64,000 bases of DNA from assembly GCA_043228905.1 (NCBI GenBank), contig JBHGNT010000018.1, positions 17,546,001 through 17,610,000 of the forward strand, written 5' to 3'. Within the stretch, counting starts at the first letter, position 1. Each line of letters begins with the position of its first letter. The notes beneath the pieces are model-generated. The model had not been told where the DNA came from. It ran no database searches and was given only the letters and a program-made list of their open reading frames with translations. Positions 5,450 to 54,027 of this stretch are shown here, one piece after another. This DNA is from Azolla caroliniana. Lineage: Eukaryota; Plantae; Polypodiophyta. The position numbers and the translations under genes are program-made.

Positions 5450-6890
5450 AATCCTTGGTGCTTGGAGGATTGTGCGTATGCTACCTTTTCCTCTCCCAAG
5501 AAGAATTATGGGGTTGATCTTGTTACTCATGCTTGTGTTGCATTAAATACCATCACTTTAGTTTTATTTAGATATCTTTATCCATACAAAATACTTTTAA
5601 AGCATTTTGATACCTTTGTAGTCTTTTCGGGGGTGTCAACAACATAATATCCCCAACAGACTATCCATCGACACAATATCATCAACATATAGTAATATTT
5701 GTATGGATATATATGCTAGCCATGCTCTTGGATTGTTCAATCCCTCTATGTAATGTGACACCTCATCTATATAAAGACCAAATAGAGTAGGTAACAAATG
5801 GTATCCTTGTTTTACTTCAATTGTGCTACCCACATCATCTGACCACCATGAGACCGCTTTGTTTCTGATACCATAGTCATGCAATGATAGATTCCCCGTT
5901 GCATATTTATAAGGATGTTGAGGGCATCTAATTGTTGCATGAGTTGCGAGCATGTCTCATTGTCAAGGTTTTTTTAGAAATCCACAAATCAACAATAAAT
6001 CCCCTTACTATGGGCTTTGCCCTCCTAAATAAGGGCTAAAAGTGTCAATATGTCAACATCCATCAATGGTAGATGTTGGCTCCATATATGCACTAACCAC
6101 ACAATATACATTATGGTAAACCTTAAATGCTTCCCACATGATGTCGAATTTGTTTCCACTCAATTCAAGTCTCCGATATCTTTAATCCATTGCGTTGAAA
6201 TCACTCTTCAAAATCACACCCAAATGACCTTATTGATAAACATGATTATGAGATTGTAATTTATTCACTCAAATAATATTGGTGCAAGCAATTGTTTTTG
6301 TATTTTACACTCTTCAAGTTTCGGCTTGAAGGGCTTGCTACAAATTTGTGTCGAGTATAAAATGCAAACCATTCTCCTTGCTACAAATTTATTCTACATG
6401 TCATGTGATCATAATGGCAACATACTCACAAATGTTTCGTGGAGCTATATCGTTCGAGAACATGTTGCATCAACTCAATGCCAAATGTCGTACTCCATAA
6501 CTAGGAGTCATGTAGGTACTTGGGGGTATAAGTAGTTCCCAATCATGATAGTCTTGTATTATAGTGATCTCTTGCTCTTGTAATCATCACACGAGCACCT
6601 TGGGTATATGGACTACACACAAGAGCAACAATCGAGGAATCTTTCCAAACAACCTAACACTAATCAACATCTCATTCTAGATATGGCATCATGATGACAT
6701 TTCATTGAATCAATTCTCCTTTTCAAGAGTGTTTTGTGCTACGACCTTTGGCATAGCTGCATATTCCTTTCACATACTTGGGCTTCACCAAACAAAGAAC
6801 ATCTTAGGAAAATGCTAAACTTATATTTCCAAAACCATATCCATTATTTTCACTAAACTTGGATGCCAAGCTGAAGGAGCAACTCTTCTA
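5450..6890 (-). pseudogene. Decayed LINE ORF2 relic (linker plus RT)
   Basis: STIEVKQGYHLLPTLFGLYIDE...LLYVDDIV in ORF 5636-5953 matches the RT of the intact LINE at 32143. Inverted copy of ~14260-15690. Confidence 0.8.
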
Positions 6891-6919
6891 CGAGCACCTC
6901 CAATGAGAATGATTATACG

Positions 6920-7168
<249 letters not shown>

Positions 7169-9900
7169 AAAATTCGAGACATTTGGGCATCCACCCATGC
7201 ATAAATGACCACCATGTCCCGTGCATCGCATGTAATCCCATTAACTCATTAATAATTTACACAAACAAAACATAATTCAAATGATTCAAATAATTTACAT
7301 GCCTGCGCAGGAAGAAGAAGAAGAAGCTCATCATCTCCATCTCACAGACACAAACTCACACTCACACACACACACACACACACACACAGAGTTAGGGCTA
7401 TTGCCTCATTCATGATTTACCAACCTTGCCTTCCCGACTTCACTTATGCAGAGAACGTCTTCAATCTAAATGCTAGTATTATTCCCCCAAAACAAAGCAT
7501 TGCCAAGGCAGAGATGATGGCCTCTATTGAGAAAGGAAGCCACGATCACATCCCATCTACAAAGCCCAAGAATACACAGAAATCAAATCTATGTAATGCT
7601 TTTGCTCATATCAAACCCAATGCTGTAGGTTAATCGTAGTGATTTATGGTTCATTGCAGCATGTAGGGGGATGGTTTACACTTTGATGGTACAATGAAGG
7701 GCCAAGAGCTCAGTTTTTGCGTTTATAAAGCTTTATATCACGAGGCATGTGTATGATCATTGATACGGTATGCACTATTTCAGGTGGCACGAGTATGATG
7801 TGTCACCGATTGATGAATTCAATGTAATAATATGCTTTTTTGTTAGCTAATTAGGGGTCTAAACACACAATGCAAGAGAAACCCCAACAAAACCCTAAAG
7901 TCTTGATCTTTCTTTTCTTTCTCATTGAACCATTGTTGTTTTTGTTCCTCTCTCTTTTCAGGTTCCTTGGATGTACTCAGCTTCTTACAGCATCGCTTTC
8001 CTTGGTTTGGATCAAAATCTGTAAGTTAAGAGTAAAAAGTTGGAGAAAGTGTAGAGAGATTTGAAGAAAAGAAATAAACGGGGAAAGTTAGAGAATGAGG
8101 CGGCCACTTGTCCTAATTTTCATTACTGTTTAATCATGTTTTGCTAGAAGTAAACAATCTAAAACTTTTAGTTTGGGAAATATCTTCGATTTAGAGCTTC
8201 ACATTCAGGTGAGTTTCCCAGAAAACGTCATCTTCATTTATCCTTCATCCAATCAGATACATTTGAAAGAGTTTGTTTTTTGCTTTCATTGGAAATCGGG
8301 TAAATGCTTTGGTATAAAGTCTATTTGGATTTTTTGTTCTGAATCGTCATCCCATCCTCTTTTGTTGAGATTTGGATCGTGCATTTAATGGAGGTCTTGT
8401 TTTCATTGGAGATTGAGAAAAGATGTTCGAGAAATATCTCTTTGATCTTTTGTCAATGTTGGTGCCATGTTCTCCATTGACATTTGGGATCATTCATCCC
8501 TTTTGATTCCTATTGTGGAACTTCAATTTTTTTCCCATATGAAAAACTAGGAAAATTTTGTTTGGGAAGTATCTCTTTTGCTTGTTTCTTAGTGTCATGC
8601 ATTCTGTTTATGGTGATTCATTCTTCAGATGCATCCACATGGAGACATATAAATGATTCTCGTTTTGCTGTTCATTGCAAATCAGGGAAAATTAGTGTGT
8701 GAAGGATCCATTTGATTTGTTCCTCTTTATCTATCTAGACTAGACATAACTTTGATCCAAACAAATGGGCCTAGGTTAAGGAATATCTTTTTTTCCTTAT
8801 TTTTGGAAGTCTGTGAGAATTCATATGGGAGAAATCTTCCCTCATTTTGTTCCATGATGTTCATGCCACAAGCATCCCTTTGATTCATCCAAATAGAGGC
8901 ATATTACTGCGTTTGTTGTGAGGAAGCAAATGCCGAAGGATAAGCATATTTTTGAACCTATATTAATGTTGCCACGGAAGATGATTTCCTTGAGGTACCA
9001 TCTTATGCATCACCTCCAGTATTTAGTGTCCCTTAAATTAAGTTGTTAGCAGGATCTCTATTAATCACGAACTTAATGTAATTAACCAATAATTAAAAAA
9101 ACCACAACGATTATATTCAATACCATAGAATGCTCAAACCATTGCCCTCCCACAGTATATGGTAAAGTGGCATGTGTCTGAGTCTTAACATGGAGAGGCT
9201 CGAGGCTAAAGGAATAGGCAAGGTTCCTGAGGTTAAACAGTCCAACATACACAAGGCAAAGCTATTGTATGTGCTACTTTTCTGATTACATTAAGTCACC
9301 TTAACAGTGCACATATGCATTCTTCACATCATGAGAGGTTGGAATTTGCTCCTGCAATTTGCTTCATCTTTTCATTGCGATTGCGATCATCGCGAGTCAA
9401 AACATAGAAAAATTGCGAGAGAGAATACCAGTATTACCAGAAAGAGGATAATACTCTTTAACCAGAAGAAAAAAACTAGAAAGAAAGAGTATTCTACGGA
9501 AAGAAAGAGAAAAATGAAGAGAAAGAAACCGAGGGCATCCCAGCCGTTGAAAAATAAAAGGACGGCATGAGCCGTGGGCCGTCGGATGGACGTCAGGATC
9601 CAACGACCCACGATTGCGTACACAAAACGCAAAACTGTCTTCTGCCCTTTTTCCGACAGAAGAACAGTAGAGACAAAGCATTTCGAACACACACAGAAAG
9701 AGAAAGAAGAGAGCCTTTGAACACCATCGCCACCCATTCATCGAGACGGCCTGAACAGCAGTTGCCTTGCAGAGTAAGGAGGAACCCACATTCTTAATAT
9801 ATGGAAATGACAAAATTACCTGCAGAATCGTATACTAGTTAGTATGGTAGGACATTACCTGCAGAATCGTATCTGATCAATTGTCGATCGTTCTAATAGG

Positions 9901-12666
9901 ATGGCTCCTGCTGGCGTAGACAGAGATACCCAAATCATTCCTAATGATGAATTCGCAGGATTACTATTACATGAGACGGAAGTGGAAGACTTCCAACAGT
10001 TGGTGCTTCAATTGCTCCACCAAACAGAAGATGATGAATCAATCAGGGTTGACTACTTGGAACTTCCCGTCACATCAACGTCCCACGACAATGTGGACAT
10101 ATATGCAGATGAGCTGGAGCAATTCCTGCTCCTGCACCAGGAAAATCAAGAGATACCTGAAGCTCTGACATCCGCAGGTCCATTAGGAGCTTCCAATATC
10201 AATAAATGTGTGCGAATAAAAATAGTAAACATGTTTCTGAAATGTTTATGCATGATACAGCTGCAGCGGGTTCCACAGAATCTCCCGTCACATCTGTCTG
10301 CATAATTGAAGACAGTCGTGAAGATCCACCAGCTCTGAGATCAGCAGGTGAATTAGGAAACTCCTGCTTTCCCATTCTGTTAATATATGCAGAGACCCAA
10401 TACCTAAATCATTTTCTAACTTATATCATGACGCTGCAGCTGGTTCTACTGCGCCTCCCATGAGACCCTTTTCCGACAATTATGGACAGGAGCGGGATCT
10501 TGATGAAGATCATAAAAGAATCAAATGGAGTTTTGAATATCCTCCAGTTCGAACATCAGCAGGTGGATTAGCAGCTTCTGCGCATAAGTACAATGCCAAT
10601 CAATATGGGCAAATGACTAAATCATTTTCTAACTTGTATATAGATTATGAAGCTGGAGCTGGTTCTACAGGGCCTCCTATCACATCGATTTCAGATATGT
10701 ATGCAGAGGATCTGGAGGAGCAATTATTACGCCTTCTTGAGGAAGACCAAGAAATAATCGAAGGGATTCCTGAATATCCTTCCCCAGCGACATCAGCAGG
10801 TGAATTAATAGCTTCTGCTCATAACTGCAATGTCAATATAATGCATCGATAAATTGAGTACATAACTTTCTAACTTATATTAGATCGTAAAGCTGCAGCT
10901 GGTTCTATAGAGGCTCCCATCAGACCATTTGCTGACAATTATGTAGAGGAGGTAGGGCTTAATGAAGATTATGAAAGAATTGAATGGAGTTTTGAATATC
11001 CTCCAGCTCAGACATCAGAAGGTGAATTTGTAGTTTCTGGGCATAAGTACAATCTCAGTCAATATGGGCAAATGACTTAATCATTTTCTAACTATTATAT
11101 AAATCATGAAGTTGCAGCTGGTTCTACAGTGCCTCCTATCAAATCAATTTCAGATATGTATGCAGAGGATCTGGAGGAGCAATTATTACTCCTTCTTGAG
11201 GAAGACCAAGAAATAATGGAAGGGATTCCTGAATATCCTTCCCCAGCGACATCAGCAGGTGAATTAATAGTTTCTGCTCATAACTGCAATGCCAATATAA
11301 TGCGTCGATAAATTGAGTACATAAATTTCTAACTTATATTAGATCGTAAAACTGCAGCTGCTTCTACAGAGGCTCCCATGAGACCATTTGCTGACAATTA
11401 TCTAGAGAAGGTAGGGCTTGATGATGAAGATAATCAAAGAATTGGTTGGAGTTATGAATATCCTCTATCTCGGACATCAGCAGGTTAATTAGTAGCTTCT
11501 GCGCATAAGTACAGCGTCAATCAATATGTGCAAATGACTAAATAACCTTCTAACTGTTATATAGATCATGATGCTGCAGTTGGTTCTACAGAGCCTCCAA
11601 TCACAACATTTTCAGATATATATGCAGAGGATCTGGAGCAGCAATTGCTGCTCCTACTTGATGAAGACCATGAAATAATGGAAAGGGGTCCTCAATATCC
11701 TCAGGCAGCAGCGACATCAGCAGGTGAATTAGTAGCTTCTGCTCATAACTATAATGTGAATAGAGAGTGCATTGGTAAATTGACTCCGTAACCTTCTAAC
11801 TTATATTAGATCGTAAAGCTGCAGCTGGTTCTACAGATTTTCTACTTGAAGAGCTGCAGCAGCAGACAAATGGCACAACCATGATTGAGGCGATGAAGGC
11901 AGAGTTGGCTGCGATCCTGCTAAATGCCGAAGGCGGGTTGAAGAAGAGGCTGAGCGCACCAATGACGACTACCCAATTCAAGGTTTTGGACGCCTTTTTC
12001 AAGATTGGTCTTCCTACATTACCATTATGCCCTCATTGCAAGACGAATGTCCACGTAGAATTTCGATATTTTAACAACCGAACGAAAACTCGATTGGTTC
12101 AGCCTCGCTTCGGCTGCAAGGTTTGCTTTGCGCCACCCCATTCTCCAGAGAAAGAATGGAACCAGCAAAAGCAGGAGGAGAATGTGAATAATAGGAAGAA
12201 GCTGGAGTTTACTCTTCACCAAGAGGAATTGGAAGTGCTGTCTTGTGCCTGGGGAGGGCTTCAAATGCTGCTGCAACGTTTCTGGTCGATGCCACATGTC
12301 ATCGAAGTTCTGGAGACCAACAAATATATTCCGTGTAGCAGCCGCCGCAAGTCTGAGAGTCCAACCAAGTCATCGCCAAAGAGGAAGAGGAGATCGTGGG
12401 AGTCGAAGCAGGTCAATAATGGTGGTAGTACTGCTGAGAACATGATTGATCATCAGATGCCTCTTATTAGAGATCATCATGATGAGGATATGTTGTGGAT
12501 GGAATCTTTTAATTCCATCATCGCAGCAGAAAGGCTAGGTAGTAGTTCTGCTGCCTATAGCCCTAGCAATACTAATCCTAACAATAATGATAGTGATTGG
12601 TATCATGATTACTATATGAGTTGCAGCAACCTGAACAATAACAACATTGCTGCTTTCACTTGGTAA
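9901..12666 (+). CDS. Predicted 9-exon, ~692-aa protein: acidic LxxLL-like repeat array plus divergent Dof-type C4 zinc finger. Exons 9901-10177, 10261-10347, 10440-10562, 10644-10799, 10884-11021, 11118-11258, 11343-11483, 11565-11723, 11810-12666
   Basis: Eight GT..AG phase-1 introns of 81-96 nt; introns 2-8 have a CTAAC branch motif. The spliced frame is stop-free (2079 nt) and joins in frame to ORF 11881-12666, which has CPHC-x25-CKVC with FRYFNN and QPRF (Dof consensus FCY(Y/F)NN..QPR(H/Y)FCK.C) and a basic PKRKRR. Some acceptors have in-frame alternatives. Confidence 0.75.
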
Positions 12667-14259: not shown

Positions 14260-17150
14260 ACAACCAAGAAGAGTTGCTCATTGGGCTTGGCATCCAAGTT
14301 TAGTGAAAATAATGGATATGGTTTTGGAAATATAAGTTTAGTATTTTCCTAAGATGTTCTTTGCTTGGTGAAGCCCAAGTATCTGAAAGGAATATGCAGC
14401 TATGCCAAAGGTCGTGGCAGAAAGCATTCTTGAAAAGGAGAATTTATTCAATAAATTACATCATGATGCAATATCTAGAATGAGTGGTTGATTAGTGGTC
14501 GGTTGTTTGGAAAGATTCCCCGATTGCTGCTCTTGTGTGTAGTCCATATAACCAAGGTACTCAAGTGATGAATACAAGAGCAAGAGATCACTATAATACA
14601 AGACTATCATGCTTGGGAACTACTTATACCCCAAGTATCTACTTATACCCCAAGTATCTGCATGACTCCTAGTTATGGAGTAGGACATTTGGCATTGAGT
14701 TGATGCAACATGTTCTTGAACGATGTAGCTCCAAAGAAACATTTGTTACTATGTGTCCATTATGATCACGTGACATGTAGAATAAATTTGTACCAAGGAG
14801 AATGGTTTGCATTTTATACTCAACACAATGCAACCTATATTCCAAGCCCTTCAAACCAAAACTTGAAGAGCATAAAATACAAAAACAATTGCTTGCACCA
14901 ATATTATTTGAGTGAATAAATTACAATCTCATAATCATGTTTATCAATAAGGTCATTTGGGTGTGAGTTTTGAAGAGTGATTTCAACAAAATGGATTAAA
15001 GATTTCGGAGACTTGAATTGAGTGGAAACAAATTCGACATCACGTGGGCATTTAAGGTTGACCATAATGTAGTATTGTATGGTTAGTGGATATATGGGGC
15101 TAACATCTACCATTGATGGATGTTGACATATTGACCCTTTGAGCACTTATTGAGGAGGGCAAAGCACATTGTAAGGGGATTTATTGTTGATTTCTAAAAA
15201 ACGTCAACAATGTGACATGCTCTCAGCTCATGCAACAATTAGATGCCCTCAAAGTCCTTATAAATATGCAATGGGGAATCTATCATTGCATGATTGTGTA
15301 TTAGAAACGGAGCGGTCTCATGGTGGTCAGAGGATGTGGGTAGCACAATTGGAGTAAAACAATGATACCCTTTGTTACCTACTCCCTTTGGTCTTTATAT
15401 AGATGAGGTGTCACATTACATAGAGAGATTGAGCAATCCAAGAGCCTGGCTAGCATATATATCCATACAAATATCTGTTGGGGATATTATGTTCTTGACA
15501 CCCCCGAAAAGACTACAAAGGTATCTAAATGCCTTAAAAGTATTTTGTATGGATAAAGATATCTAAATAAAACAAAAGTGATGGTATTTAATGCAACACA
15601 AGCATGAGTAACAAGATCAACCCCATTCTTCTTCTTTGGAAAGGAAAAGGTGGCATACGCACAATCCTACAAGTACCAAGGAATACCATTCAAAGGTTCG
15701 GAACTCTCCTTGTGAAAGGTTGCTTGTGCTCAACCCTCTCATGGATATGGAGTCGTTGGTGCTCATTTACAATTCCAAGAACCACAAACTCAATTGTGGC
15801 TATTCAATACACTTGATGGAGTGGAAACTTTGGAAAGAGTCTTAACACGGAAAACGACTAGAAAGATTTAGAGAGACCTTTAGTCTCAATAATTGCCTAC
15901 ATGAATAGCAACAAAGCATCAATGCCCATGATATAATTTGATCACACATGGAGATATTCATTGTTGATATGTTGAAACCCAATAATAGTTTGAGTCACAT
16001 GGCATAAACATAAAGGCATTGCCTCCACCTCAATATACCTTGGATTGTCCCCATCTAAACATGAACAATGTGGAAAGACTAGAGTGATTCGAAGTGACAT
16101 TGCCAAGTTGGAAAAAAAATAATTAGCCCACAATATCGCTTCGTAAGAAGATGGTCCACCACAAGAGAAGCTTTTTACACGCATTGAAGGATTAGTGTGA
16201 TAACATAGCTGCAAACCTTTCACAATAATCAAAGATTGAGGTAGGTAGATATATTGTACAAATATCTCTAAAAGAAAGAGTTTGCCACTTGTGTCATCAA
16301 GGAGTGGAATCTGAAGAACATTGTGTGTATCATTGTGCCTATTTTTATGAAATAAGGGGGCGATACCATTGCCTCTTTTAAGCAAGCCTTTGCCCTACTA
16401 CACAAGGTAATAGAATATGAGGACCAACGATGCTTGAGGCTTTTCTTGCTAGAACTCAAGAGACACAGGGAGAAGTTGATAGGAAACAACACAACCACAC
16501 AAGCTAATGAACAAAGAACAATCATAACTTTCTTTACCCATCGCTCTTCCTCATGCTATAAGTCAACCAAAGCCTACACAAATGGGATCCCAACCAAGAG
16601 ATTTTGAAGGGTTTAGGGTGAAATAAGGAGGAGATACCATTGGCTCTTTTAAGCAAAGCTTTGGCCTACTACGCAAGCTAATGGAATATGAGGACCAATG
16701 ATGTTGAAGAATTTTCTTGCTAGAACTCAAGAGACACAGGGAGAAGTTGATAGAAAACAACACGACCAGACAAGGTAATGGACAAAGAACAATCATCACT
16801 CTCTAAATTACCCAACACTCTTACTCGTGCTACAAGTCAATCAAATGGAGGATGTGCAATGGCATTCCCCAAAAGATGGGTGACGTGCCAATTCCATACA
16901 AGTGGAGGTTTTGGCGACATCAAGGTTGTTACGGTGGGAAGGTAAACAACTTCTTAAACTTCAATTTAAGCGGATGGTTAGATTGGGTTCTACTTCAATT
17001 TAAACCCTAAACCCTAGTGGTACACCCCTAAGCCAAAATGGGTGACCCCATAATAAGCCCTATTCCTCCCCTCTTATAGAGGACAGAGGCACCTATATTA
17101 ACTTTACATGCATTTTTTTTATTTCCTTTTGTCACAACAAAGGAAGAGGA
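14260..17150 (+). pseudogene. Decayed LINE ORF2 relic through the C-terminal CCHC region
   Basis: VDHI/LT-like motif at ~15125, LLPTPFGLYIDE, an R.CHLC....E.EEH.V..C-like stretch at ~16275-16340, and a C-terminal PIPPPL resembling the intact LINE end. Internal ~270-bp tandem duplication (~16350-16575 / ~16620-16845). Confidence 0.75.
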
Positions 17151-19789: not shown

Positions 19790-21060
19790 GCTTTTCCATA
19801 AGATGGTCTTTGCTTGGTGAGGCCCAAATATATGAAAGGAATATGCGGCTATGCCAAAGGTCGTCACGCAAAGCAGTCTTGGAAAGGAGAACTGATTCCT
19901 TGAAATATGTATATGATGTGGATTGTCATCATGATGTAGTATCTAGAATGAGTGGTTGACTAGTGTTAGGTTGCCACGAAAGATTCCTTGATTGTGGCTC
20001 TTGTGTGTAGTCCATATAGCCAAGTTGTGAGAGTGTGAATACAGGAGGAAGGGATCACTATAATACAGGATTATTCATGCTTGGGAGCTACTTATTCCCC
20101 AAGTACCAGCATGACTCCTAGTTATGGAGTAGGACATTTGGCATTGAGTTGATGCAACATGTTCTTGAATGATATAGCCCCAAGAAACATTTGTCAGTAT
20201 GTGTTCATTATGATCACACCACATGTAGAATAAATTTGTAGCAAGGAGAATGGTTTGCATTTTTTATTGTACACAATGCACCCTATGTTCCAAGCCCTAA
20301 CTCCGAAATTTGAACAACGTGAAAATACAAAAACATTTGCTTGTACAAGTTGTTACCCATTCCTTTGGGTGAACACCTTTGATAGATCTGTGTCTATCGG
20401 TCTTCAAGGGCGTGGTACGTGAAGGCTCGTAACAGAGGCATCGAGAGAGATACAGGGCTCAGAGAGAAAACACTAGCGAGGTCTTGATGGACGTGGCGGC
20501 GTGAAACTCATAGGTATGGATCAAAGCACAGACTCATGCAGCAAAAATAGGCACAAATCAGATATATTACTATGACAAAAAAGATTACAGAACACAGCCT
20601 ATGGCCGGTGACCTTACGAGTTTATCTAATTACGAAGGACTAAGCTAGTGCTTCCGCCTATAGTTTTCTTCTCTCCCTCTCTGAGGTACTGGTCCTCGTT
20701 TAAATAACTTTTCCCCTAATACACAGCCGAGCCGTCGGTGGCCCGTGATACTCGAACTCGGCGTTTGCTAATTTCCTAATTTTACATTTCTGTCCTCTGG
20801 ACAACACAAGTAGTATTTGTGTGGATAAAGTACAACCTCATAATCTTTTGAACTATCAATTAAGGTTGTTTCAGTGTGAGTTTGAAGAACTATTTTAATA
20901 CAATGGATTAAAAATGTCAAAGACTCAAATTGAGTGGAAGCATGTAAGAAAAAAAATCAACGTCATGTGAGAAGCATTTAAGATTGACCATAACGCAATA
21001 TTGAATGGTTAATGCATATGGGGGCCCAATATCTAGCATTGATGGATGTAACATTTCATG
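19790..21060 (+). pseudogene. Third decayed LINE relic, paralogous to ~14345-15125, interrupted by a solo LTR
   Basis: Colinear with the other relics (e.g. shared antisense ORF MQTILLATNLFYM). Colinearity resumes after 20811. Confidence 0.7.
20351..20806. mobile_element. Solo LTR (456 bp) with 5-bp TSD CAAGT
   Basis: TGTT...AACA termini. CAAGT at 20346-20350 and 20807-20811. The paralogous site at ~14895 is empty. Confidence 0.85.
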
Positions 21061-29757: not shown

Positions 29758-29819
29758 CTACATATACATACACATACACATACACATATACTGTTATACA
29801 CATACATATACTGTTATAG

Positions 29820-29910
<91 letters not shown>

Positions 29911-30152
29911 TACACTGTTATACATATACTGTTATACATATACATATACTGTTATAGATACACATACACATACACATACACTGTTATACATATACTGTTA
30001 TACATATACATACACTGTTATACATATACTGTTATACATATACATATACTGTTATAGATACACATACACATACACTGTTATACATATACATATACTGTTA
30101 TAGCTACACATACACATACACATACACTGTTATACATATACATATACATATA
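29758..30152. repeat. Compound microsatellite (ACATAC)n with TACTGTTA interruptions
   Basis: Directly visible. Confidence 0.92.
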
Positions 30153-30680
30153 CCCTAAATTTCCACTAAGATAAGTTAGAAGGAAACCCTAATGTGTAAA
30201 AATCACAAAAGGTAACGGGGAAAAACCCTAAAACGATCTCAAGAACCAAGACAGACGAGCGAATCAGAAAGCACATAGACTTAAGGAAACCCTAATGAAG
30301 AGAAAACACGTAAACCCTAATTATTTCACTAAGAAAAGTTAGAAGGAAACCCTAATGTGTAAAAATCACAAAAGGTAACGGGGAAAAACCCTAAAACGAT
30401 CTCAAGAACCAAGACAGACGACCGAATCAGAAAGCACATAGACTTAAGGAAACCCTAATGAAGAGAAACCACGTAAACCCTAATTTTTCCACTAAGAAAA
30501 GTTAGAAGGAAACCCTAATGTGTAAAAATCACAAAAGGTAACGGGGAAAAACCCTAAAACGATCTCAAGAACCAAGACAGACGAGCGAATCAGAAAGCAC
30601 ATAGACTTAAGGAAACCCTAATGAAGAGAAAACACGTAAACCCTAATTATTTCACTAAGAAAAGTTAGAAGGAAACCCTA
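30152..30680. repeat. 163-bp tandem repeat (~3.2 copies), four AAACCCTA teloboxes per unit
   Basis: AGGAAACCCTA following GTTAGA recurs at 30181, 30344, 30507 and 30670. Units are near-identical. Confidence 0.93.
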
Positions 30681-32091: not shown

Positions 32092-35000
32092 TACCGGGAC
32101 GGACGTGTCATAATAAATGATCGTGCCGCCAATTGACGGCGTGTGGCCCATGTGACAGATAATAAACTTAGGATCACTTTATGGAACTGTAACGGCGCAC
32201 TTTGGACACATCCTGGCCGTCTAGAGGAGATTTTGAAAGTATCTGATATACTTTTTGTAGTAGAAACACATCAAAGCCCAAATCGAGGACTGCCACGAGT
32301 TGACGGTTTTCGTTGGGAATCTGTCTTTAGACAAACCTCACGTCGACACACTACTAGAGGGTCTGGGGGGGTTGCGATATTATTTCGGAAAGAGATAAAT
32401 AATAGGATAGAAATACTAAAGTCAGACCCAGAAGCCCGTTTTATGTGGGTGAAAGTCCTCACTAGTAAGGATCATGTGATATTTATCGCAGTTTGTTACT
32501 TCCCCCCGAAAGGGTCCCGCTACAATATGGCTGGAGAGGCGAGTATAGTTGATGAAGGAACGCCACATGGGCCTTCTCCATACGAACCTTTGTCGGATGA
32601 CATAATCCGATATTCTTCTCAAGGGGAAGTCTTCCTGGTAGGAGATTTCAATGCGAGAACCCAGTCCCGACAATGCACAATATTTCAGATGGATAGAAAC
32701 CTAGAAATGGTGAATGTCGACCCTTTAGCCTTAGGCATAACACGTACATCGAAGGATCAAGGTGCGGATGCCACAAGCTTTGGCCATCATCTGCTTGAAC
32801 TTGGAAGCCGACACCAGATGATCATATATAATGGCTTAGCCAAGTGGCCGGGCTCGGAAGAGCTCACATGTTTCCCACATGGAGGAGGGGAAAGCACCGT
32901 TGATTATCTAATAGGACGCCCTGAAGCTACCCACATGGTTAGCTCCTTCCGGGTGGCCCCATGCCCCATTGGGGCAGACCATACCTTCCTATACTTTGAG
33001 CTAAAATGTGACACCTCCCACACCACCAACTCTAGTAAACCAACCCATCACACTATAATACATTTCACGCATGAGCTCGCGGACATCTACTCTCGACATG
33101 TTCAAGCCCATCTTTCCTCGTTTGATTCTTCCTTGCCTTTAGAGAACCTCACTACAGAACTCACACACATCCTTCACTCAGCCGCCACTAGTAGCTTCCC
33201 ATACACGAAAGACTCCAATCATAGTAGAATAGGGTCTATGCCACAAAACAAGTGGTATGACGAGGATTGTAGAGAGTTGTATAGACAACTTAAAGTATCG
33301 CGACTCAGTGGTACTATCTCCTTAGTACAGGCTCGCAAAGAGATGCGCAAGATGACACGTCGTAAAAGACGAGCTTGGGAAGCATCCCAATATTGGGAAC
33401 TCTACCATATGCTCATGAGTAGGGATTGTGCCCTTGCATGGAAGAGACTACGGGAACCGAGACCACAAACACCCATCGAGGATCCCAATATTTGGCACAC
33501 ATATACCGAGAGACTCTACCATGTCCCGAACCAACCACCCATTCCAATGCCCTCCACACCTCGACCTACCATGGGGACACTTTTCACGACCTCTAGGGTC
33601 ACGAAGGTCATAAAAAAATTACAACATAGGAAATCCATGGACCACACAGGATTGCGAGCCGAGCACATCATATATGCTCGAGAGTGCCTAGCTCCCCTTC
33701 TCACTCTAATCTTCAACCGCGCCCTCGCCGAGGGTTTTCCACCACAATGGGCCATGAACACTGTGGCCCCTATACATAAAGGAGGGGACCCAATGGACCC
33801 AAATACATATAGGACCATTATGATAGGTCATACGCTTGCTAAACTATATGGTGCAGTAATGGAAGCGGAGCTCAGTGATTATATGGAAACATTAAGTCTT
33901 CGAGCACCTGAGCAGGCTGGCTTTAGACGAGCCTTCTCCACTATTGACCACATCTTTACACTTAGGTGCTTAATTGACCAAACAAAGGCTCGTAAGAAGA
34001 AACTATATTGTTGCTTTGTGGACTTTCGCAAAGCCTTTGATACAGTTCCTAGGGAGAGGTTGTTTGATAGACTTAAGAGCTTGGAGATACCAAATGACAT
34101 GATTTGGGCCATTTATGCCCTATATGAGCAAGTCTATGGGCGCGTAAGATGCCCAGGTGGCCTATCCGATTGTTTCACTAGCACCATTGGTGTAAAACAG
34201 GGTTGCCCCCTATCACCGACTCTTTTTGGGATCTACATTGATGAGATCACTGATTTTATTGCTCGTAAGGGAGGCAAAGGAGTGGCTATTGGGGATACGC
34301 AAGTTAGTCTCTTACTCTACGCAGACGACATTGTCTTGCTCTCGGAGTCGGAACACGACCTACAAAAGCATCTTAATGCCCTAGATGACTTTTGTACACA
34401 ACGAGGACTGGTAGTGAATCTAGCGAAAACTAAAGTCCTTATCTTTCATACATCGTCCAGAGTTAGGAGTAAATGTCACCTCATCCTCTCTCATAAACTA
34501 GTTGAGGTGGTGGGATCTTATGTATACTTGGGAGTCACTTTTAGTGCTCGCTCAGGTAAATTCTCGATGACCCAGGCAGCCAAAGATAGGCTAACGAGAG
34601 GATATGCATCCCTCTCACTCTTAGAGAGACAATGCCACCAAGCATACTTTCAAGAGCCACGGACTAAGGGATGGCTTTTCGACTCATTAGTGACCCCGTC
34701 CCTCATGTATGCATCAGTAGTATGGGCTCCAGGTCTACCATCTTTCATGTGGACGCAATTGGAGAGACCTTTAGTGGTGATGTTATCACGTCAACTCCGA
34801 AGCAAATCGACAGTACCACATGACATTATTAGAGCGGAGTTTAGCCTACCCCCGATGTTAGTAGAAGCACTCTTTCAAGTGGTAGCTTTTATTCATCGGA
34901 TACATAGTCAACCACAAGATAGGATATCCCGTCGAGCCTTTGAGGCATCCCGATCCTTACATGTGTCTGGAGACACCAACTCTTGGTATAGCATTGTGGT

Positions 35001-36116
35001 GAGTTGGTTATTTGCAAATGGCATAGACATTAATAACCTACCTCCCCTTAAGTACAACCATGGGACTGATCAAACTTTAATCTCTCGTGAAGATCGTAAT
35101 AAAGTGATACGCCAAGACATATGGCAAATCTACACTCGATACAAATGGATCACCCCACGAGAGCCACTCCCATCTAAAATGGTGTACTATAAGGAACACT
35201 TCTTGCACTTCTCTAAGTTAGGGTTTATTACACGACCAAGATACCTAGATACTTTCTTATCAAATGCACTAAGGGTGGCCATTGGACAACTTAGGATATC
35301 ATCTCACCAACTTGAGATTGAGAATGGTCGAGCTAATAGAGTCCCTAGAGAGGAAAGGCTATGTAGGTTATGCCACATAGAGATAGAGGATGAGTATCAC
35401 TTCACATGCAAGTGCCCAACTTATGCCGAGATACGGGCGGAATACCAAGACATACTAGGACCCTCTCCCACCCTCTCCAAACTATTAGATACCCCGAGTG
35501 TAAAGAGACTAGGTAGGTATATCTTAGAGCTAAAACAACATAGGGAGGATAAATTACAAAGTGTTAATCATAACCCTTTTACTACTCATCAACATGTACC
35601 TAGTGTAATTTTTCAGGAACATGGGGAGACGATGAATGTGGATACACTTATGCCGCTCGGCCTCTCCCTTGAGGAAGCAGAAATACAAAGAGCAACCAAA
35701 CGTCCTCGGATGTTGGGCTTCAACACAAGTCAACGTGGAGTAGAAAAGATTAAGAAGATAAGGGAACGTGAGCTACGCCGACTCGAAGCTATGGTTGGGG
35801 TACCTCTTACATGGGGACCACGGGCCACATCCACATCATGGCAACCCTTTGACCCCCCGCTTCTCTTCGAGAGACTTGGATGGAAATGAAATTAGGCCTA
35901 GTATAGAATCATTCTCATTGTAGAACATGTTTTTTATATAGAACATGTTTGTTGTTTTCTTAGAACTATTTAGCTTAAACTCTATTTTATCTTATTTTTA
36001 TTTTTACTTTCGATGAATGGGTAAATATCCCATTTTTGTTGTACACCATTTGTCTCATGGGCCAATTTTGGCCTTAGAAGACGTTAATATATCTTTCTTT
36101 CTTCTTTCTTTCTTTC
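32092..36116 (+). mobile_element. 5'-truncated LINE (possibly RTEX-like) with intact ORF2, 3' UTR hairpins and (CTTT)n tail
   Basis: Short ORF1-like remnant (YRDGRVIIND..*), then a 1248-aa ORF2, palindromes at ~36017-36032 and GGCCAATTTTGGCC at ~36060, and a tail at 36093-36116. Inserted in a CT-rich tract. Clade assignment is inference. Confidence 0.9.
32143..35889 (+). CDS. LINE ORF2: AP-type endonuclease, reverse transcriptase and C-terminal CCHC
   Basis: LWNCNG, ETH, SGGVAIL, GDFNAR, STVDY, ADH (EN); QAGFR, FVDFRKAFD, GVKQGCPLSP, YADD (RT); CRLC..EDEYHFTCKC. No stops. No ATG before codon 101. Confidence 0.93.
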   Translation: MAHVTDNKLRITLWNCNGALWTHPGRLEEILKVSDILFVVETHQSPNRGLPRVDGFRWESVFRQTSRRHTTRGSGGVAILFRKEINNRIEILKSDPEARFMWVKVLTSKDHVIFIAVCYFPPKGSRYNMAGEASIVDEGTPHGPSPYEPLSDDIIRYSSQGEVFLVGDFNARTQSRQCTIFQMDRNLEMVNVDPLALGITRTSKDQGADATSFGHHLLELGSRHQMIIYNGLAKWPGSEELTCFPHGGGESTVDYLIGRPEATHMVSSFRVAPCPIGADHTFLYFELKCDTSHTTNSSKPTHHTIIHFTHELADIYSRHVQAHLSSFDSSLPLENLTTELTHILHSAATSSFPYTKDSNHSRIGSMPQNKWYDEDCRELYRQLKVSRLSGTISLVQARKEMRKMTRRKRRAWEASQYWELYHMLMSRDCALAWKRLREPRPQTPIEDPNIWHTYTERLYHVPNQPPIPMPSTPRPTMGTLFTTSRVTKVIKKLQHRKSMDHTGLRAEHIIYARECLAPLLTLIFNRALAEGFPPQWAMNTVAPIHKGGDPMDPNTYRTIMIGHTLAKLYGAVMEAELSDYMETLSLRAPEQAGFRRAFSTIDHIFTLRCLIDQTKARKKKLYCCFVDFRKAFDTVPRERLFDRLKSLEIPNDMIWAIYALYEQVYGRVRCPGGLSDCFTSTIGVKQGCPLSPTLFGIYIDEITDFIARKGGKGVAIGDTQVSLLLYADDIVLLSESEHDLQKHLNALDDFCTQRGLVVNLAKTKVLIFHTSSRVRSKCHLILSHKLVEVVGSYVYLGVTFSARSGKFSMTQAAKDRLTRGYASLSLLERQCHQAYFQEPRTKGWLFDSLVTPSLMYASVVWAPGLPSFMWTQLERPLVVMLSRQLRSKSTVPHDIIRAEFSLPPMLVEALFQVVAFIHRIHSQPQDRISRRAFEASRSLHVSGDTNSWYSIVVSWLFANGIDINNLPPLKYNHGTDQTLISREDRNKVIRQDIWQIYTRYKWITPREPLPSKMVYYKEHFLHFSKLGFITRPRYLDTFLSNALRVAIGQLRISSHQLEIENGRANRVPREERLCRLCHIEIEDEYHFTCKCPTYAEIRAEYQDILGPSPTLSKLLDTPSVKRLGRYILELKQHREDKLQSVNHNPFTTHQHVPSVIFQEHGETMNVDTLMPLGLSLEEAEIQRATKRPRMLGFNTSQRGVEKIKKIRERELRRLEAMVGVPLTWGPRATSTSWQPFDPPLLFERLGWK

Positions 36117-46290: not shown

Positions 46291-48435
46291 AGAAAACCCT
46301 AACAGGTCGAAAACAGACACAGTAGAAGACATGGATAGAGGCATGGCTACGTCGCTCCCGGTGGAGAAGCTTGACAGGAGCAACTACGCATCCCGGTCTT
46401 ACAAGATGCACCAGTACCTGCTTGGACACGGGTACTGGAGTTATGTCGAAGGAGCGAATGATGCGGCGCCCGACTCGCTCGCCTCTATCAATGTTACCGT
46501 AGAGGAAGACGAGATGGTGCAGGTATGTCTCGGAGGCCTGGCGTCCAAGTTCGGAGCGTTCCGGACTGTGGTGTGTACAAGGGAGAATACCCCCTCATTC
46601 TTCGACTTACAGTTGATGCTCCTTGTAGAGGAGAACCACACCGGTGCATCTACCAATGCATCCCTGGATAGCCGAATGCTGTACACGGGAACGGATCGGC
46701 TCCATGGGCGTGGTGGAAGAGGTGGGTCGGCACACAATGGAGGCGGCCGGCAAGAGCAGGAACGGAGGCACTATGAGCGTGCCGACAGCAGTTCCGGGAC
46801 TTCCACAAGCAGGGGGAGTCAAGGTGGTGCCGGAGGCCGGCAAGACAAATCCGCTACGGAATGCTGGTACTGTGGCAAAAAAGGCCACAGGGAAAACGAG
46901 TGTTGGAGAAAGCGTGCCGATTAGGACAAATCCGGATCCGGCAAGACCGGTAAGGATGGCCGGCAAAACTCGCACTACACAAACGGATTAGGAGGATCCG
47001 GAACCGGAAAGGCCGGTAAGGGGCCAGCCTTGGTGATGAATCACAAGGCAAACTCAATGAAGAAGACCACTTCCAAAACGGAGGAAGTGTGGTATGTTGA
47101 TTCCGGCGCGTCGAACCACATGACGAGCCACAAAGAGTGGTTCTCCTTTCTGGAGAAACCGGATCAACCAGGAGTAGTCGAAACCGGAGACGACACTCCT
47201 CACCCAATCGTGCATGTCAGAGAAGTCCCTCTAAGCCACGTCGGACAGAAAGGGAAGCTGATGAACGTATTACACGTTCCGACAATCACGAAGAACTTGG
47301 TGTCCGTCGGTCAGATTGTCGACCAGGGGATGCAGGTGCGGTTTACACACCTCGGGTGCTTCATTGAGGATGAGGGTGAAGTCATTGCGCAAGGGCGCAG
47401 AGACGGGAGGATGTTTATCCTCAACACCAATGACTTTGGCACCGCTCTGTTCGCGAAACGACAGAAGGTCGAGTCGGACATCGACCTGTGGCACAAGCAG
47501 ATAGGCCACGTCAACTACCGGAGGCTTCAAGACCTGCAAACGAAACAAGTCGTTTTCGGTTTGCCGAAGTTCAGCGGCCAGAGAGCCAAAATTTGTGAAG
47601 TCTGCCAACTTGGGAAGCAACACCGGCTTCCATTCCCCACCGAACGGAACCGGAGCCGTAACAAGCTCGATCTCATCCATTCGAATGTGTGGGGACCGGC
47701 ACAAAGTGTAAGCCTTGACGGGAGCCGATACTTCGTCTCCTTCATCGACGACTATACTCGACATACTTGGATCTACCTCATTGAGCGGAAGAGCGAAGTC
47801 TTCGACTGTTTCCGGAGCCTCCAGAAGATGGTGGAACGGGAATCGGAGAGGAAGATCAAATGCCTTCGGTCGGATGGCGGAAAGGAATATTTTTCTGGCC
47901 AATTCACTAGTTATCTGCAGCAGAAGGGAATTTGGCGAGAGTTCAGCTGAAGATACACACTGGAGCAAAACGGTGTGGCCGAAAGGAAGAACTGGACACT
48001 CGTCGAAGCGGCAAGGGCAATGCTGGAGGAGAAGAGCATGCCCCGGTTCTACTGGGAGGAGGCGTTCTGGACGGCCGTCTACATTCAAAACCGCATTGGT
48101 GACAAGGTGTCAGCTCATGAGCTGTATTTCGGGCGCAAGCCGAACTTAAGACACCTTCGGATATTCGGCAACATAGCGTATGTGCATGTGCCAGATCAGA
48201 AGCGGAGAAAGCTAGATGCAAAATAGGAAAAATGCATCCTAGTCGGCTATGCTCAAGAGCAAAAGGGGTATAAGTGCTATAACCCCCGGACGAAGGAAGT
48301 CCGAGTTAGCCGGGATGTCGAGTTCGATGAATCGGCATCCTGGTACTCCGTACCGACTCCGACTTCCGATCCCGACCCAATGTCGGAAGATCAGGCCAGT
48401 GAGCCTGAATCAGCCCTGGCAGAGGATGATGAAGC

Positions 48436-51400
48436 TGTTGGGAGACAGGTCCCTCCGGATGGGAAGGGAGAAGAACAGTGCCGATGAACAAACTCGGCCG
48501 AGGCCGAAACCGGATGAGGAGTACCCGGCTACGGAGAGCCGGATGGTGCAGACCCGTTGTGAACCGGATGAGGAGTACCCTGCTACGGAGAGCCGGATGG
48601 TGCAGCCCCGGTGTGAACCGGATGAGGAGTACCCGGCTACGAAGAGCCGGATGGTGTAGGCTCGATGAGAACCGGATGAGGAGTACCCGGCTACGGAGAG
48701 CCAGATGGTGCAGGCCCGGTGAGAACCGGATAAGGAGTACCCGGCTACGGAGAGCCGGATGGTGCAGACCCGGTGAGAACCGAAGGAAGAGACATATTCG
48801 TAAATATGTTTCTGAGAGCCCATCGAGGCTATATTTGTAAATAGCCGAAAAGTCATATTAGTATAAATATGACTTAGGGAAAACTTTTTTGTGTTGTTGT
48901 TGTCATTTTCCTTTTTGCACGAGATTAGTGTGTGTAATTGTACAGAGAGAGAGAGAGAGAGAGAGAGAAAGAGGTCGTTGCCTCTGTTGTAACCGCCGCC
49001 TGTGGCGAAGATTTGTGAGCACGAGGTCGGTGCCTCAGTGAACTCATTGTTGTATATTCCTACATAGTGACAGTTTGCAACCTGTGGGCTGCCGTGGTTT
49101 TTCCTCTAGTTTGGGGTTTTCCACGTAAACCTCCTGTGTATTCTCTTCTTCTTCTTGTCGAGTTTTATTTCCCGTTTTCTGTGTATCATTCTAAGCTCGG
49201 TTGTGGCCGAGCATCGCGCATAAAGAACGTTGCGTTCTCGTCAAGTGGTATCAGAGCGAAATGACACAGAAAATGGACGAATCGTTTGGCGGCATGTTCA
49301 AGCTCACCGGCTCCAACTATTCAGTGTGGAAGTCGAAGATGAGGTACATGCTCGTGGTTAAAGACTTCTGGCTACCGGTTCAGTTCGGGGACAAGAGACC
49401 GGACAAGATCGACGCCACAATATGGGAGGTGATGCACATGAAGACAACGGCGTACATACGGTGCTTCATCGACATGAGCCTATACAACAACTTCAATGAA
49501 GAGAGCAAGGCTCATGAGCTCTGGGAGAAGATCGGCATAATGTTTCAAAACAAAAATGCTATCAATCAGGTGTCGGTATTCCGGAAGCTAGTAAGACTCC
49601 GGTACCAAGATGGCTCCAGCATGGCGGAGCACATGAATGCCTTCCAGGGGCTGATCCACCAGGCAACTTCATTGGAAGTACCTCTCGCTGATGAGGTACT
49701 AGCGCTACTCTTGCTCGGTTCCCTCCCGGATAGTTGGGAGACGTTGGTTGTCACTTTGGGCAACGCCGGGCCGGAAGGAAAACGGTTATCCCTAGCAAGA
49801 GTAAAGTCGAGCTGGCTAGATGAGGAGGCGCGTCGGAAAGATAAAGATACGAGCTCCGACTCCAAAGCACTACTTACCGAATCGGAACGCGGAAGACATA
49901 GAAACCGTAGTCCCCAGAACCGGGACAAGTCAGGGACACGGTCAAAGTCAAGGGGGAGGCCTACTTGTTTCTATTGCGGCAAGCCGGGACACTTCCAGAA
50001 GAACTGTCGGCACTTCCGTAAAGACAAGGAAACCAACGGTGCCGATTCGAAGTGGACCCCGGACCGGAACGGTAAAGACTGGAGGGGGCCGGACCGGAAG
50101 GGAACGACGGCAATCGCGGCAAGTGAAGAAGAGTTGATGCTCATCACTGAGGAGAGTGAGATAAACCTTGCCGGCGATGAGATGACCTGGGTGGTAGACT
50201 CCGGAGCGTCGTTCCACCTTACCCCGGACCGGAAATGCTTCTCATCCTACTCAGCCGGTGACCACTGCTGTGTTCGGATGGGGAATGAAGGTACATGCAG
50301 AATTGTCTGCATAGGAGACGTGTGGCTGTCAACACCAACCGGATGCAAGTTGCTGCTAAAGGATGTCGGACACGTTCCGGAGGTTCGTCTGAACCAGATA
50401 TCAGTCGGTCGGCTAGATGATGAAGGCTACACGGGTAGCATCCGGAACGGGGTCATGAAGTTCAGCAAAGGGAGCTTGATTGTGGCTCGGGCCCGGAAGG
50501 TCAACACGTTGTACCTGATGAATGCCAGGTTATGTCCGGAAGAAGTGAACGTGGCATTCGACACTGCCGATGAGCTGTGGCACAAGAGGTTGTGTCATAT
50601 GAGCGAGAAGGGGATGAAGAGGCTTGCAGACGACAACCTCATTCCAGTGAAGAACGTGCACTTACAGAAGTGCACTGATTGTCTGGCCGGTAAGCAGAAC
50701 CGAACCTCCTTCCGACCAAGGCCACCGATGAGACGTAATGCACAACTGGAGTTGGTGCATACGGATGTGTGTCAGGTAGACACGAAGTCACATGCCGGAG
50801 CGCAGTACTTCGTGACGTTCATAGATGACCACAACCGGAAGCTGTGGGCCACACCGTTGAAGACGAAGGATCAGGTGTTATCCGTCTTCAAAGAGCTCCA
50901 CGCGAGAGTGGAAAGAGAAACCAGCCGGAAGCTGAAGTCGGTTCGAGCAGATAACGGAGGAGAATACCGGGGGCAGTTCGAGGAGTACTACCGCTCGAAG
51001 GGAATCCGGCTCGAATTTACCATGCCGAAGACGCCGGAACTAAACGGGCTGGCCGAGAGGATGAGCCAGACCATAATGGGGAGGGTCTGGAGTATGCTAG
51101 CGCATGCAAAACTACCCAAGGAGTTTTGGGTTGAGGCACTGTCGACGGCGACATATGTGATAAACAGATCACCCTCAGTACCCTTGGACGGAGACACACC
51201 ACAGAGAGTATGGACCGGTCAGGAAGTATCCTACCGGCATCTGAAGGTGTTCGGGTGTCTCGCGTACGTGCATGTGGCTAAGGACCAGAGAGGAAAGCTA
51301 GATCCAAAGACCCGGCCATGCATATTCCTCGGTTACGGTGACGATGAGTTCGGCTACCGAGTGTGGGACCCGGTCGACAAGAAGGTATTCCGGAGTCGAG

Positions 51401-54027
51401 ATATTATCTTCATGGAGGACAAGACGCTCGCCAATTGGGAGTCGGAGAAGAAGATAATGAACTCCGAGTCGACTGGTAAGGATCGACTCTACGATGAGCA
51501 AACCTAACCGGCAAGAGACCGGTTAGCACTTGAGGGACCAGCCAGTTACGGTGAGGATACCGAACAGGCTGAAGAAGAAGTAGTGGAAGCTGAAACCGGA
51601 ACCGGCCTAGACCCCGAATCGGATTCGGATGAAGAGCAGATGGACGAGCCGGTTACTGAAGCCCGAAGACGGAGATATCCTCTTCTCAGAGAGAGAAGGG
51701 CGCCCCAGAGATTTCCGGATGCAGAGCATGTTCTGCTGACCGATGAGGGGGAGCCGGAAAGCTTCGAAGAAGCGAAGGAAGACACCCACAGCCGGAAATG
51801 GTTGAGTGCCATGCTGGATGAGATGGATTCCCTGCATGAGAACCATATGTACGAATTGGTGGAGTTGCCGAAAGGAAAGCGGGCACTCCGAAACAAGTGG
51901 GTGTACAAGTTGAAACCGGGAGATGCCGGCAACCCCCCGAGATACAAAGCCAGGATCGTGGTGAAGGGGTTCCAGCGGAAGAAGGGCGTGGACTTCGACG
52001 AGATATTTGCCCCGGTAGTAAAGATGACCTCCATCCGGACGGTGCTGAGTATAGCAGCAAGCATGGACCTCGAGGTAGAGCAGCTGGACGTGAAGACGAC
52101 ATTCCTTCACGGCGACCTCGAAGAGGAGATCTACATGCAGCAACCGGAAGGATTCGTGGAGAAAGGGAAGGAGCACCTGGTATGCCGGTTGAAGAAGAGC
52201 CTGTACGGACTGAAGCAGGCTCCCCGACAATGGTACCGGAAGTTCGACTCCTTCATGACTGATCAAGGGTACCACAAGACGCAGGCTGATCACTGCGTGT
52301 TTGTGAAGAAGTTTGAAGGAGGCGACTTCCTGATACTCCTTCTGTACGTGGATGACATGTTGATCGTCGGACGGGACCAAGTCAAAATACGGATGCTGAA
52401 GAAGGCTCTCAACCGGACCTTCTCAATGAAAGACTTGGGTCCGGCAAGACAGATGTTGGGGATGCACATCATCCGGAACTGGTAAGCGAAGCAATTATGG
52501 TTGTCACAGGAGAAGTATGTGACAAAGGTGCTTCACCGGTTCAACATGTCAGAAGCGAAACCAGTCGGATTGACACTTCCGGCAAACTGCAGGCTATTCG
52601 GCAAGCAAAGCCCTAAGACAAAAGTAGAGAAGGCGGATATGATGAAGATTCCATATGCCTCTGCCGTTGGGAGCTTGATGTACGCAATGGTTTGTACTCG
52701 ACCGGATATAGGATACGCAGTCGGAGTGGTGAGCCGGTTCATGAGTAATCCCGGCAAGGAGCACTGGAACGCGGTCAAATGGATACTCCGGTATTTGAAG
52801 GGCACTTCAAATATGTGTCTCCGATTCGGCTCCGGAAAACCTCAACTGGACGGTTTCACCGATTCAGACATGTCGGCTGATGTGGATACCAGCCGGTCTA
52901 CATCTGGGTATGTAATGACATACGCAAGGGGAGTTGTTTCTTGGCAGTCGAGCCTGCAAAAGACGGTTGCATTGTCAACCACGGAGGCGAGTACATGGCA
53001 GCTGTGGAAGCCGGCAAGGAAATTTTATGGATGAAGGACTTCATCGGAGAGCTCGGTAAATGGCAAGAGGAATACCGACTCCATTGCGATAGTCAAAGTG
53101 CCATCCACCTTGCTAAGAATGCGGCCTACCATTCCCGGACGAAGCATATCCAGCGGAGGTATCACTGGATCCGGGAAAGAGTAGATGACCAGGAGTTCGC
53201 ACTGACGAAGATCCACACGGCCGAGAACGTGTCAGATATGCTGACCAAAGTGCTGACACCCGACAAGCTGGACGCATGCCGGAAGAGGATCGGATTGGTA
53301 AGACACCCCATGCCGGAGTGAAGGGGGAGTTTGTTGGGAGACAGGTCCCTCCGGATGGGAAGGGAGAAGAACAGTGCCGATGAACAAACTCGGCCGAGGC
53401 CGAAACCAGATGAGGAGTACCCGGCTACGGAGAGTCGGATGGTGCAGGCTCGGTGAGAACCGGATAAGGAGTACTCGGCTACGGAGAGCCGGATGGTGCA
53501 GACCCGGTGTGAACTGGATGAGGAGTACCCGGCTACGGAGAGTCGGATGGTGCAGACCCGGTGAGAACCGAAAGAAGAGACATATTCGTAAATATGTTTC
53601 TGAGAGCCCATCGAGGCTATATTTGTAAATAGCCGAAAAGTCATATTAGTATAAATATGACTTAGGGCAAACTTTTTTGTGTTGTTGTTGTCAGTTTCCT
53701 TTTTGCACGAGATTAGTGTGCGTAACTGTACAGAGAGAGAGAGAGAGAGAGAAAGAGGTCATTGCCTCTATTGTAACCGCCGCCTGTGGCGAAGATTTGT
53801 GAGCACGAGGTCGGTGCCTCAGTGAACTCACTGTTGTATATTCCTACATAGTGACAGTTTGCAACCTGTGGGCTGCCGTGGTTTTTCCTCTAGTTTGGGG
53901 TTTTCCACGTAAACCTCCTGTGTATTCTCTTCTTCTTCTTGTCGAGTTTTATTTCCCGTTTTCTGTGTATCATTCTAAGCTCGGTTGTGGCCGAGCGTCG
54001 CGCATAAAGAATGTTGCGTTCTCGTCA
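48436..54027 (+). mobile_element. Full-length Ty1/copia element B (Tnt1/Tork-like): LTRs 48436-49243 and 53332-54027, PBS 49246-49257, PPT 53320-53329, TSD GAAGC
   Basis: TG..CA LTR pair. TGGTATCAGAGC (tRNA-iMet PBS). GAAGC at 48431-48435 and 54028-54032. Confidence 0.97.
49261..53321 (+). pseudogene. gag-pol of element B with two in-frame stops and one frameshift
   Basis: CFYCGKPGHFQKNC, VDSGAS, HKRLCH..C..C, RADNGGEY, YVDD, DSQSAIHL. TAA at 51505 and 52483. Frameshift near 52990. Confidence 0.93.

Follow-up and report, generated by a model that had tools for sequence, protein, structure and literature searches.

Can a tandem array of repeated exons and introns, placed in front of a Dof-like zinc finger, be part of a single translated gene, and if so, what might the array do? 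This question is raised by a locus of the fern Azolla caroliniana (assembly GCA_043228905.1, contig JBHGNT010000018.1). It occupies positions 9901 to 12666 on the forward strand of a 64,000-nucleotide stretch of DNA, here called the window, to which unprefixed coordinates refer. A sequence-only reading of the locus had proposed a lineage-specific transcription factor whose activation or interaction domain is expanding by symmetric exon duplication.

Eight GT donors with a shared sequence context divide the locus into nine coding exons, the last exon bases lying at 10177, 10347, 10562, 10799, 11021, 11258, 11483 and 11723. Each donor cuts after the first base of a codon, making all eight introns phase 1, and alignment within the gene shows all eight to be homologous to one another. 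In seven of the eight introns, a CTAAC branch-like motif is found 67-73 nt from the 5′ end, and most introns offer two in-frame AG acceptor candidates 15 nt apart, a choice that DNA alone cannot fix. The open frame starts with the ATG at 9901, ends with the stop at 12666 and encodes 694 aa when the first AG after CTAAC is used, and 665 aa with the homologous TGCAG acceptors 15 nt further on. The seven internal exons are multiples of three nucleotides (3n) under every acceptor version. Stops or frame shifts occur in seven of the eight introns, the exception being intron 3, which is open and 3n. Most internal exons alternate between two module types, A and B, and TRF gives the AB pair a period of 459 bp (10433-11837, 3.0 copies, 86% matches). 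The earlier observations of homologous phase-1 introns, 3n internal exons, stops or shifts in most introns and an AB period of about 460 bp are all borne out, as is the 692-codon frame into the Dof-like exon, since that reading's acceptors give 692 aa without an internal stop. Its count of about eight A and B modules needs revision: the repeat is real, but there are seven internal exons between the eight introns, and exon 2 is a shortened third type, C (81-87 nt depending on the acceptor). Further, exons 1 and 9 are partly module-derived. The unit is thus present in all nine exons: alignment to the modules takes in the 3′ half of exon 1 (z up to 10.6) and, in exon 9, the initial ~135 nt (z up to 7.6). 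The internal order in the window is cABABAB, and exon 6 is 96% identical to exon 4, both being of type B. With the TGCAG acceptors, the features are as follows.

9775..9863, + strand: candidate 5′ UTR intron, with a donor GTAAGG near 9775 and putative TGCAG acceptors near 9824 and 9863
9901..10177, + strand: coding exon 1, 92 codons plus 1 nt, acidic, carrying an LxLxL motif and homologous to the modules in its 3′ half
10178..10266, + strand: intron 1, phase 1, acceptor 10260 or 10266
10267..10347, + strand: exon 2, type C shortened in frame, 81 nt against 129-141 nt in relatives
10348..10439, + strand: intron 2, phase 1
10440..10562, + strand: exon 3, type A
10563..10658, + strand: intron 3, phase 1, acceptor 10643 or 10658, open and 3n
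10659..10799, + strand: exon 4, type B, with an acidic Leu-rich segment and LxxLL
10800..10898, + strand: intron 4, phase 1, acceptor 10883 or 10898
10899..11021, + strand: exon 5, type A
11022..11117, + strand: intron 5, phase 1, upstream AG lost, acceptor 11111 or 11117
11118..11258, + strand: exon 6, type B, with a predicted activation tile
11259..11357, + strand: intron 6, phase 1, acceptor 11342 or 11357
11358..11483, + strand: exon 7, type A
11484..11579, + strand: intron 7, phase 1, acceptor 11564 or 11579
11580..11723, + strand: exon 8, type B
11724..11824, + strand: intron 8, phase 1, acceptor 11809 or 11824
11825..12666, + strand: exon 9, with a degenerate module start, two helices, the finger, a helical segment, an NLS-like motif, a low-constraint tail and the stop
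12028..12126, + strand: Dof-derived zinc ribbon, CX2C-X25-CX2C, with family-invariant FRYFNN and QPR
12376..12393, + strand: basic NLS-like motif PKRKRR, a putative localisation signal whose basic cluster is retained in relatives

The donor and both CTGCAG copies of the candidate 5′ UTR intron are retained in most relatives. Splicing of the coding introns is something we infer from this arrangement. Four sequence runs showed no splice joints, and contigs of this kind cannot show absence. A search of runs for the gene listed no RNA run among its matches, and X14, a possible RNA run, contained only intron-containing pieces of other gene copies. At the start of exon 9 (11825-11840), 27 nt are missing in frame relative to the alleles L019, L020, L022 and L023; L021 has the same gap.

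Introns are known to arise by tandem genomic duplication, in plants among other organisms (PMC3443670; PMC4974935). The locus has the hallmarks of symmetric exon duplication, with homologous same-phase introns flanking homologous 3n exons, which agrees with the proposal that the array grew by duplication of exon plus intron. We suggest that tandem copying of a single block, with a phase-1 intron inside it, gave rise to the array. Because the block would span such an intron, each new intron would copy the same intron and each new exon would be 3n. Divergence would then have produced types E, C, A and B, with the AB pair becoming the repeating unit. Unequal crossing-over would add or remove AB units while leaving the frame intact, and selection would keep the array translatable and weakly acidic, not its exact residues. 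Classic cases of tandem exon duplication are animal structural or extracellular repeat proteins. Here, in contrast, duplication has given a putative plant transcription factor an acidic array that is polymorphic, its block number still varying between alleles. The mechanism is known in kind; the novelty lies in combining an acidic array of intron-bounded units, polymorphic in copy number, with a Dof-derived fern domain that seems not to have been described before.

Close homologs of exon 9 (73-99%) came only from ENA metagenome assemblies containing assembled host DNA, with host contigs at 2-17x. They mark about 25 loci with two to seven internal modules, which fall into at least five clades, two clades being found within single samples. 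One clade has 2 kb of upstream flank in common with the window and, by that flank, is probably orthologous to the window gene; another adjoins a dNK gene. Seven internal modules are found in the window, L020 and L022 (all cABABAB) and also in L008, five in L004, L009, L010 and L012, four in L006, and two in L011. Three loci at the window's own position (L023, L019 and L021) have one AB unit fewer, two against three, and L023 is 98.3% identical to the window locus over 4.75 kb. The join in L019 is a hybrid exon, with exon 5 in front and exon 7 behind, and that in L023 is a switch from intron 5 to intron 7. At these breakpoints, exact matches reach at most 11-16 nt (introns 5/7) and 21-34 nt (exons 5/7), so that the shorter alleles are unlikely to stem from assembly collapse, although L011 and L008 may be chimeras of assembly. 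Near-identical alleles that stand one AB unit apart, with different breakpoints, point to repeated unequal crossing-over as the simplest cause of the differences in AB number. The array both grows and shrinks. Consequently, the description of it as expanding does not stand, as module number goes up as well as down among alleles and relatives (2-7).

Some copies of the family are altered or decaying. A paralog adjoining a deoxynucleoside-kinase gene (L001:4503-6137 and L001:7053-7718) has an insertion of ~1 kb after exon 1, extra partial module-2 copies that have no acceptors, and an exon 9 shortened by a 631-nt deletion, with the finger intact. Skipping of the damaged modules would probably stay in frame. 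L013 and L015 have two stops and a 10-residue gap in the finger. In L026-L029, which adjoin a PPR gene, the finger is deleted and an A/B chimeric exon is frameshifted. In L004 and L006, a donor has changed from GT to TT.

The loci were collected via exon 9 and not via the modules, so there is no selection bias toward intact modules. Across all loci, 66 of 67 distinct module exons have 3n length, compared with 35 of 67 introns, the rows being related to one another; counted as length classes, this becomes 7 of 8 for exons and 8 of 19 for introns. The modules contain a single stop codon, where 14.4 would be expected from tree length, which gene conversion among modules may inflate, or 7.3 on a conservative count. 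That stop lies in a clade whose exon 9 is broken too, and the sole frame-breaking exon recurs in the finger-deleted broken copies. The GT donor is retained in 65 of 67 introns. Both acceptor AGs are lost in 2 of 67 introns, against ~4 expected, which does not demonstrate that one AG compensates for the other.

At the level of amino acids, the picture is different. Module dN/dS is 0.96 (A), 0.83 (B) and 0.71 (C/E), and that of exon 1, which is open in nine distinct relatives, is 0.88, none of them significantly below 1. Module cores are nominally lower (0.70-0.76), and the difference between cores and flanks is not significant. Jukes-Cantor-type distances (JC) of exons and introns are 0.18 and 0.18 for type A and 0.17 and 0.20 for type B. 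The sequence-only reading had held that equal divergence of exons and introns would mark a neutral tandem repeat, and equal divergence is what we find. Despite this, the strong depletion of stops and frameshifts argues that the array is not a neutral repeat. Acidic columns remain acidic slightly above expectation (p 0.04), and within D/E columns swaps between the two acids are about twice as frequent as expected (14 against 7.6); changes from acidic to basic residues in the modules show no depletion. Positive selection found no support in site models (2dL 1.5-3.1, with an optimiser that converged poorly). The domain formed by the helices and finger, in contrast to the tail of exon 9 (0.73), is strongly constrained, with a dN/dS of 0.21 (2dL 81). 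Selection on the modules is supported for their frame, in which stops and frameshifts are depleted, but not for their residues, with dN/dS at 0.7-1.0 and exons as divergent as introns. So, on these substitution patterns, the array appears to be translated and its composition weakly constrained, which sets it apart both from a neutral repeat and from a folded repeat under conservation. The gene itself is very probably real and translated.

What does the array precede? The zf-Dof profile PF02701, which the sequence-only reading had proposed running against exon 9, does match it (E 3.2e-5), but its 24.4 bits lie under the gathering cut-off of 26.6 and the match covers only model positions 6-34 of 59. 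The same profile matches seven of eight close relatives, with a best E of 1e-6. Further, a profile of the fern family described below matches CDF1 (8XUF) at E 6.3e-4, which argues that the core is homologous to Dof. With Dof proteins (CDF1, PDB 8XUF; CDF2) the finger has in common a C2C2 zinc ribbon, an aligned CP.C...F.Y.NN...QPR..CK core and a basic NLS-like motif. The differences are substantial. The Dof motif is defined as CX2CX21CX2C (PMC9477738), whereas the spacing here is CX2C-X25-CX2C. CDF2 contacts DNA through K166, R170, Y171 and W172 (PMC9477738), and of these only the K is retained, with CKVCFAPP in place of CKACQRYWT. The Cys of KFCY is Arg here, the RYWT-GG-R-VP tail is absent, and the gene has predicted flanking helices and eight introns. 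Dof proteins are 200-400 aa long with an N-terminal finger (PMC9897228), unlike this protein, in which the finger lies at residue ~454 of ~665. An AlphaFold model folds the finger as a beta-hairpin ribbon (pLDDT 63), for which Foldseek places 8XUF in its top row, though weakly (E 1.4; VIA Z 2.3, tied with other zinc ribbons). A model of the 150-aa domain adds two helices before the ribbon and three after it (pLDDT 74), and a structure search with it against PDB and Atlas gave no significant match. By sequence, the finger is derived from Dof and yet lies outside the family as its defining motif draws it; the earlier label of an atypical Dof finger is apt for ancestry but not for membership.

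The distant homologs that have names are Ceratopteris richardii and Adiantum proteins (HMM E 6e-7 to 6e-4), namely KP509_38G041000, KP509_39G002600 and KP509_04G056200 from Ceratopteris, and L7F22_069139, L7F22_007257 and GOP47_0006642 from Adiantum. All family-invariant columns are present in the window protein: P-x-C-P-x-C, V-x-FRYFNN, K, QPR, C and a downstream F. The fern proteins resemble it in their CX2C-X25-C core, upstream helices, downstream F-strand and internal finger, at 24-35% domain identity. They differ in their fourth ligand, which varies (Cys or His, further away) whereas the window subfamily has CxxC, and they are without the acidic module array or a predicted activation tile. 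At least one of them (P0024) is intronless. The window subfamily sits on a very long branch of the domain tree, and branches of such length kept the tree from placing it. An HMM search over all lengths found no full-length annotated relative, and a literature search found no description of a fern Dof-like finger family. The claim of a lineage-specific gene is supported; the finger family is found in ferns, and its other members lack the modules. The same metagenome assemblies also hold an intronless 586-aa family member (L018:377-2137), close to Ceratopteris KP509_39G002600 and its relatives.

The repeat region itself is 404 aa long and markedly acidic, with 87 D/E against 19 K/R, and 69 L/W/F/Y. 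We applied a published activation rule (PMC10550315) to 39-aa tiles, requiring a charge of -9 or lower and at least seven WFYL residues within the published boundary; the predictor was built on human proteins and has a positive predictive value of 0.2-0.7. Thirty tiles satisfy the rule, in exon 1 and exon 6 and, with longer acceptors, in exon 8 too, compared with 0 of 10 module-free fern relatives. That exons 1 and 6 are so predicted makes the claimed acidic activation region plausible. It is like the acidic activation domains of VP16 H1, CITED2 and Gcn4 in having acidic tiles rich in W/F/Y/L that satisfy the rule and in its fast sequence turnover; such domains can retain function without retaining sequence (PMC13004512). 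This putative region differs from them in being encoded as intron-bounded repeats.

Two inverted LINE reverse-transcriptase fragments of ~1.4 kb, with matching ends, flank the gene at 5452-6889 and 14267-15682 (88% identity overall, 89-96% in ungapped blocks), and a third, older copy lies at 19792-21049. We rejected the idea of a transposon-borne cargo gene, which should be bounded by terminal inverted repeats or a target-site duplication and be dispersed in high copy number, as the flanking pair consists of two LINE fragments, the left of which was not seen in allele L025; the upstream flanks common to the window and the clade of L006 and L009 also disfavour it. About 7 kb upstream of the allele in L025, a relic copy has its finger-coding part duplicated in inverted orientation (L025:8327-8916; also L017:2430-3187), and this duplication folds as a long hairpin (z -29). 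This duplication is absent from the window, but its loop sequence turns up in two runs of the same organism, X1 and X14, as loose ends. It is a possible source of small RNAs against the family. Elsewhere, the window holds an intact-looking 1248-aa LINE ORF2 and several Ty1/copia-type LTR retrotransposon ORFs (32143-35889; 46331-53321; 54499-56346; 60256-63405), among which a 54-bp tandem repeat occurs twice (48508-48782 and 53404-53570). Long ATACAC-type microsatellite arrays and a 163-bp tandem repeat of 3.3 copies lie at 6915-7169, 29760-30153 and 30152-30680.

Several explanations compete for these observations. The locus might be a non-coding or unspliced tandem repeat before a single-exon Dof-like ORF (ATG 11881), or a silent pseudogene. 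The want of a listed RNA run, the intron-containing X14 pieces from other copies, the equal exon and intron divergence, the broken relatives (stops in L013/L015, the finger lost in L026-L029, GT>TT in L004/L006) and fern relatives such as P0024 that are encoded without introns all fit this account. Yet it is very improbable, as 3n lengths in 66 of 67 exons against 35 of 67 introns, together with the depletion of stops, are incompatible with neutral DNA, the finger domain is constrained, and the ATG, donors and branch-like motifs are retained. Alternatively, the gene may be real and translated, with modules that drift as an acidic spacer: selection would tolerate them and act only to hold the frame open, and their number would have no effect on function. 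Any exon upstream of exon 9 would be purged of stops, and a dN/dS near 1, divergence equal to that of introns, module numbers of two to seven among relatives and the deletion of the acidic core of module 2 in the window clade are all consistent with such a spacer. We consider it unlikely, though a serious contender: the array satisfies the activation rule where module-free relatives do not, D and E replace each other within D/E columns more often than expected, and exon 1 and the array are present in every clade with an intact finger.

The protein could also act as a repressor or decoy, with LxLxL and LxxLL motifs recruiting a co-repressor such as TOPLESS, or with the finger titrating partners of true Dof factors. 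Exon 1 and two of the B modules contain LxLxL, the R, Y and W contact residues are lost, and the Dof domain is known for protein-protein contacts too. Strong net acidity and aromatic residues fit activators better, however, and the invariance of FRYFNN...K...QPR across ferns is what a conserved surface for nucleic acid or a partner would show. We regard this role as improbable. We give about even credence to a nine-coding-exon gene for a nuclear regulator that, judged from its predicted parts, would join a multivalent acidic activation region to a DNA-binding domain of altered specificity. Its N-terminal ~400 aa would form an acidic, Leu/aromatic, proline-linked array that binds coactivators. 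The constrained helix and zinc-ribbon domain of its C-terminal half would bring that array to DNA, with a specificity other than the AAAG of Dof.

We speculate that this regulator may be adjustable. Tentatively, and with rather low confidence, a fern-specific Dof-derived DNA-binding domain of new specificity, coupled to an activation region built from cassettes, could provide a heritable and splice-level dial on activation strength. Module number varies by allele, with two or three AB units at the same locus. Since any module can be skipped in frame, the number could vary between splice forms as well. As a possible addition, the neighbouring inverted duplicate of the finger exon may make small RNAs against the family.

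For evolutionary analysis, the modules illustrate clearly how selection can keep a coding frame open and let the encoded residues drift. A plain comparison of exon and intron divergence would misclassify such modules as a neutral repeat. For ferns, the locus points to a fern-wide family of Dof-derived fingers that the Pfam cut-off mostly misses and about which our literature search found nothing; a DNA target of this family, if there is one, would be expected to differ from AAAG. Alleles with differing module numbers already exist in this family, and they would provide a natural experiment on activation-domain valency and on the birth of introns.
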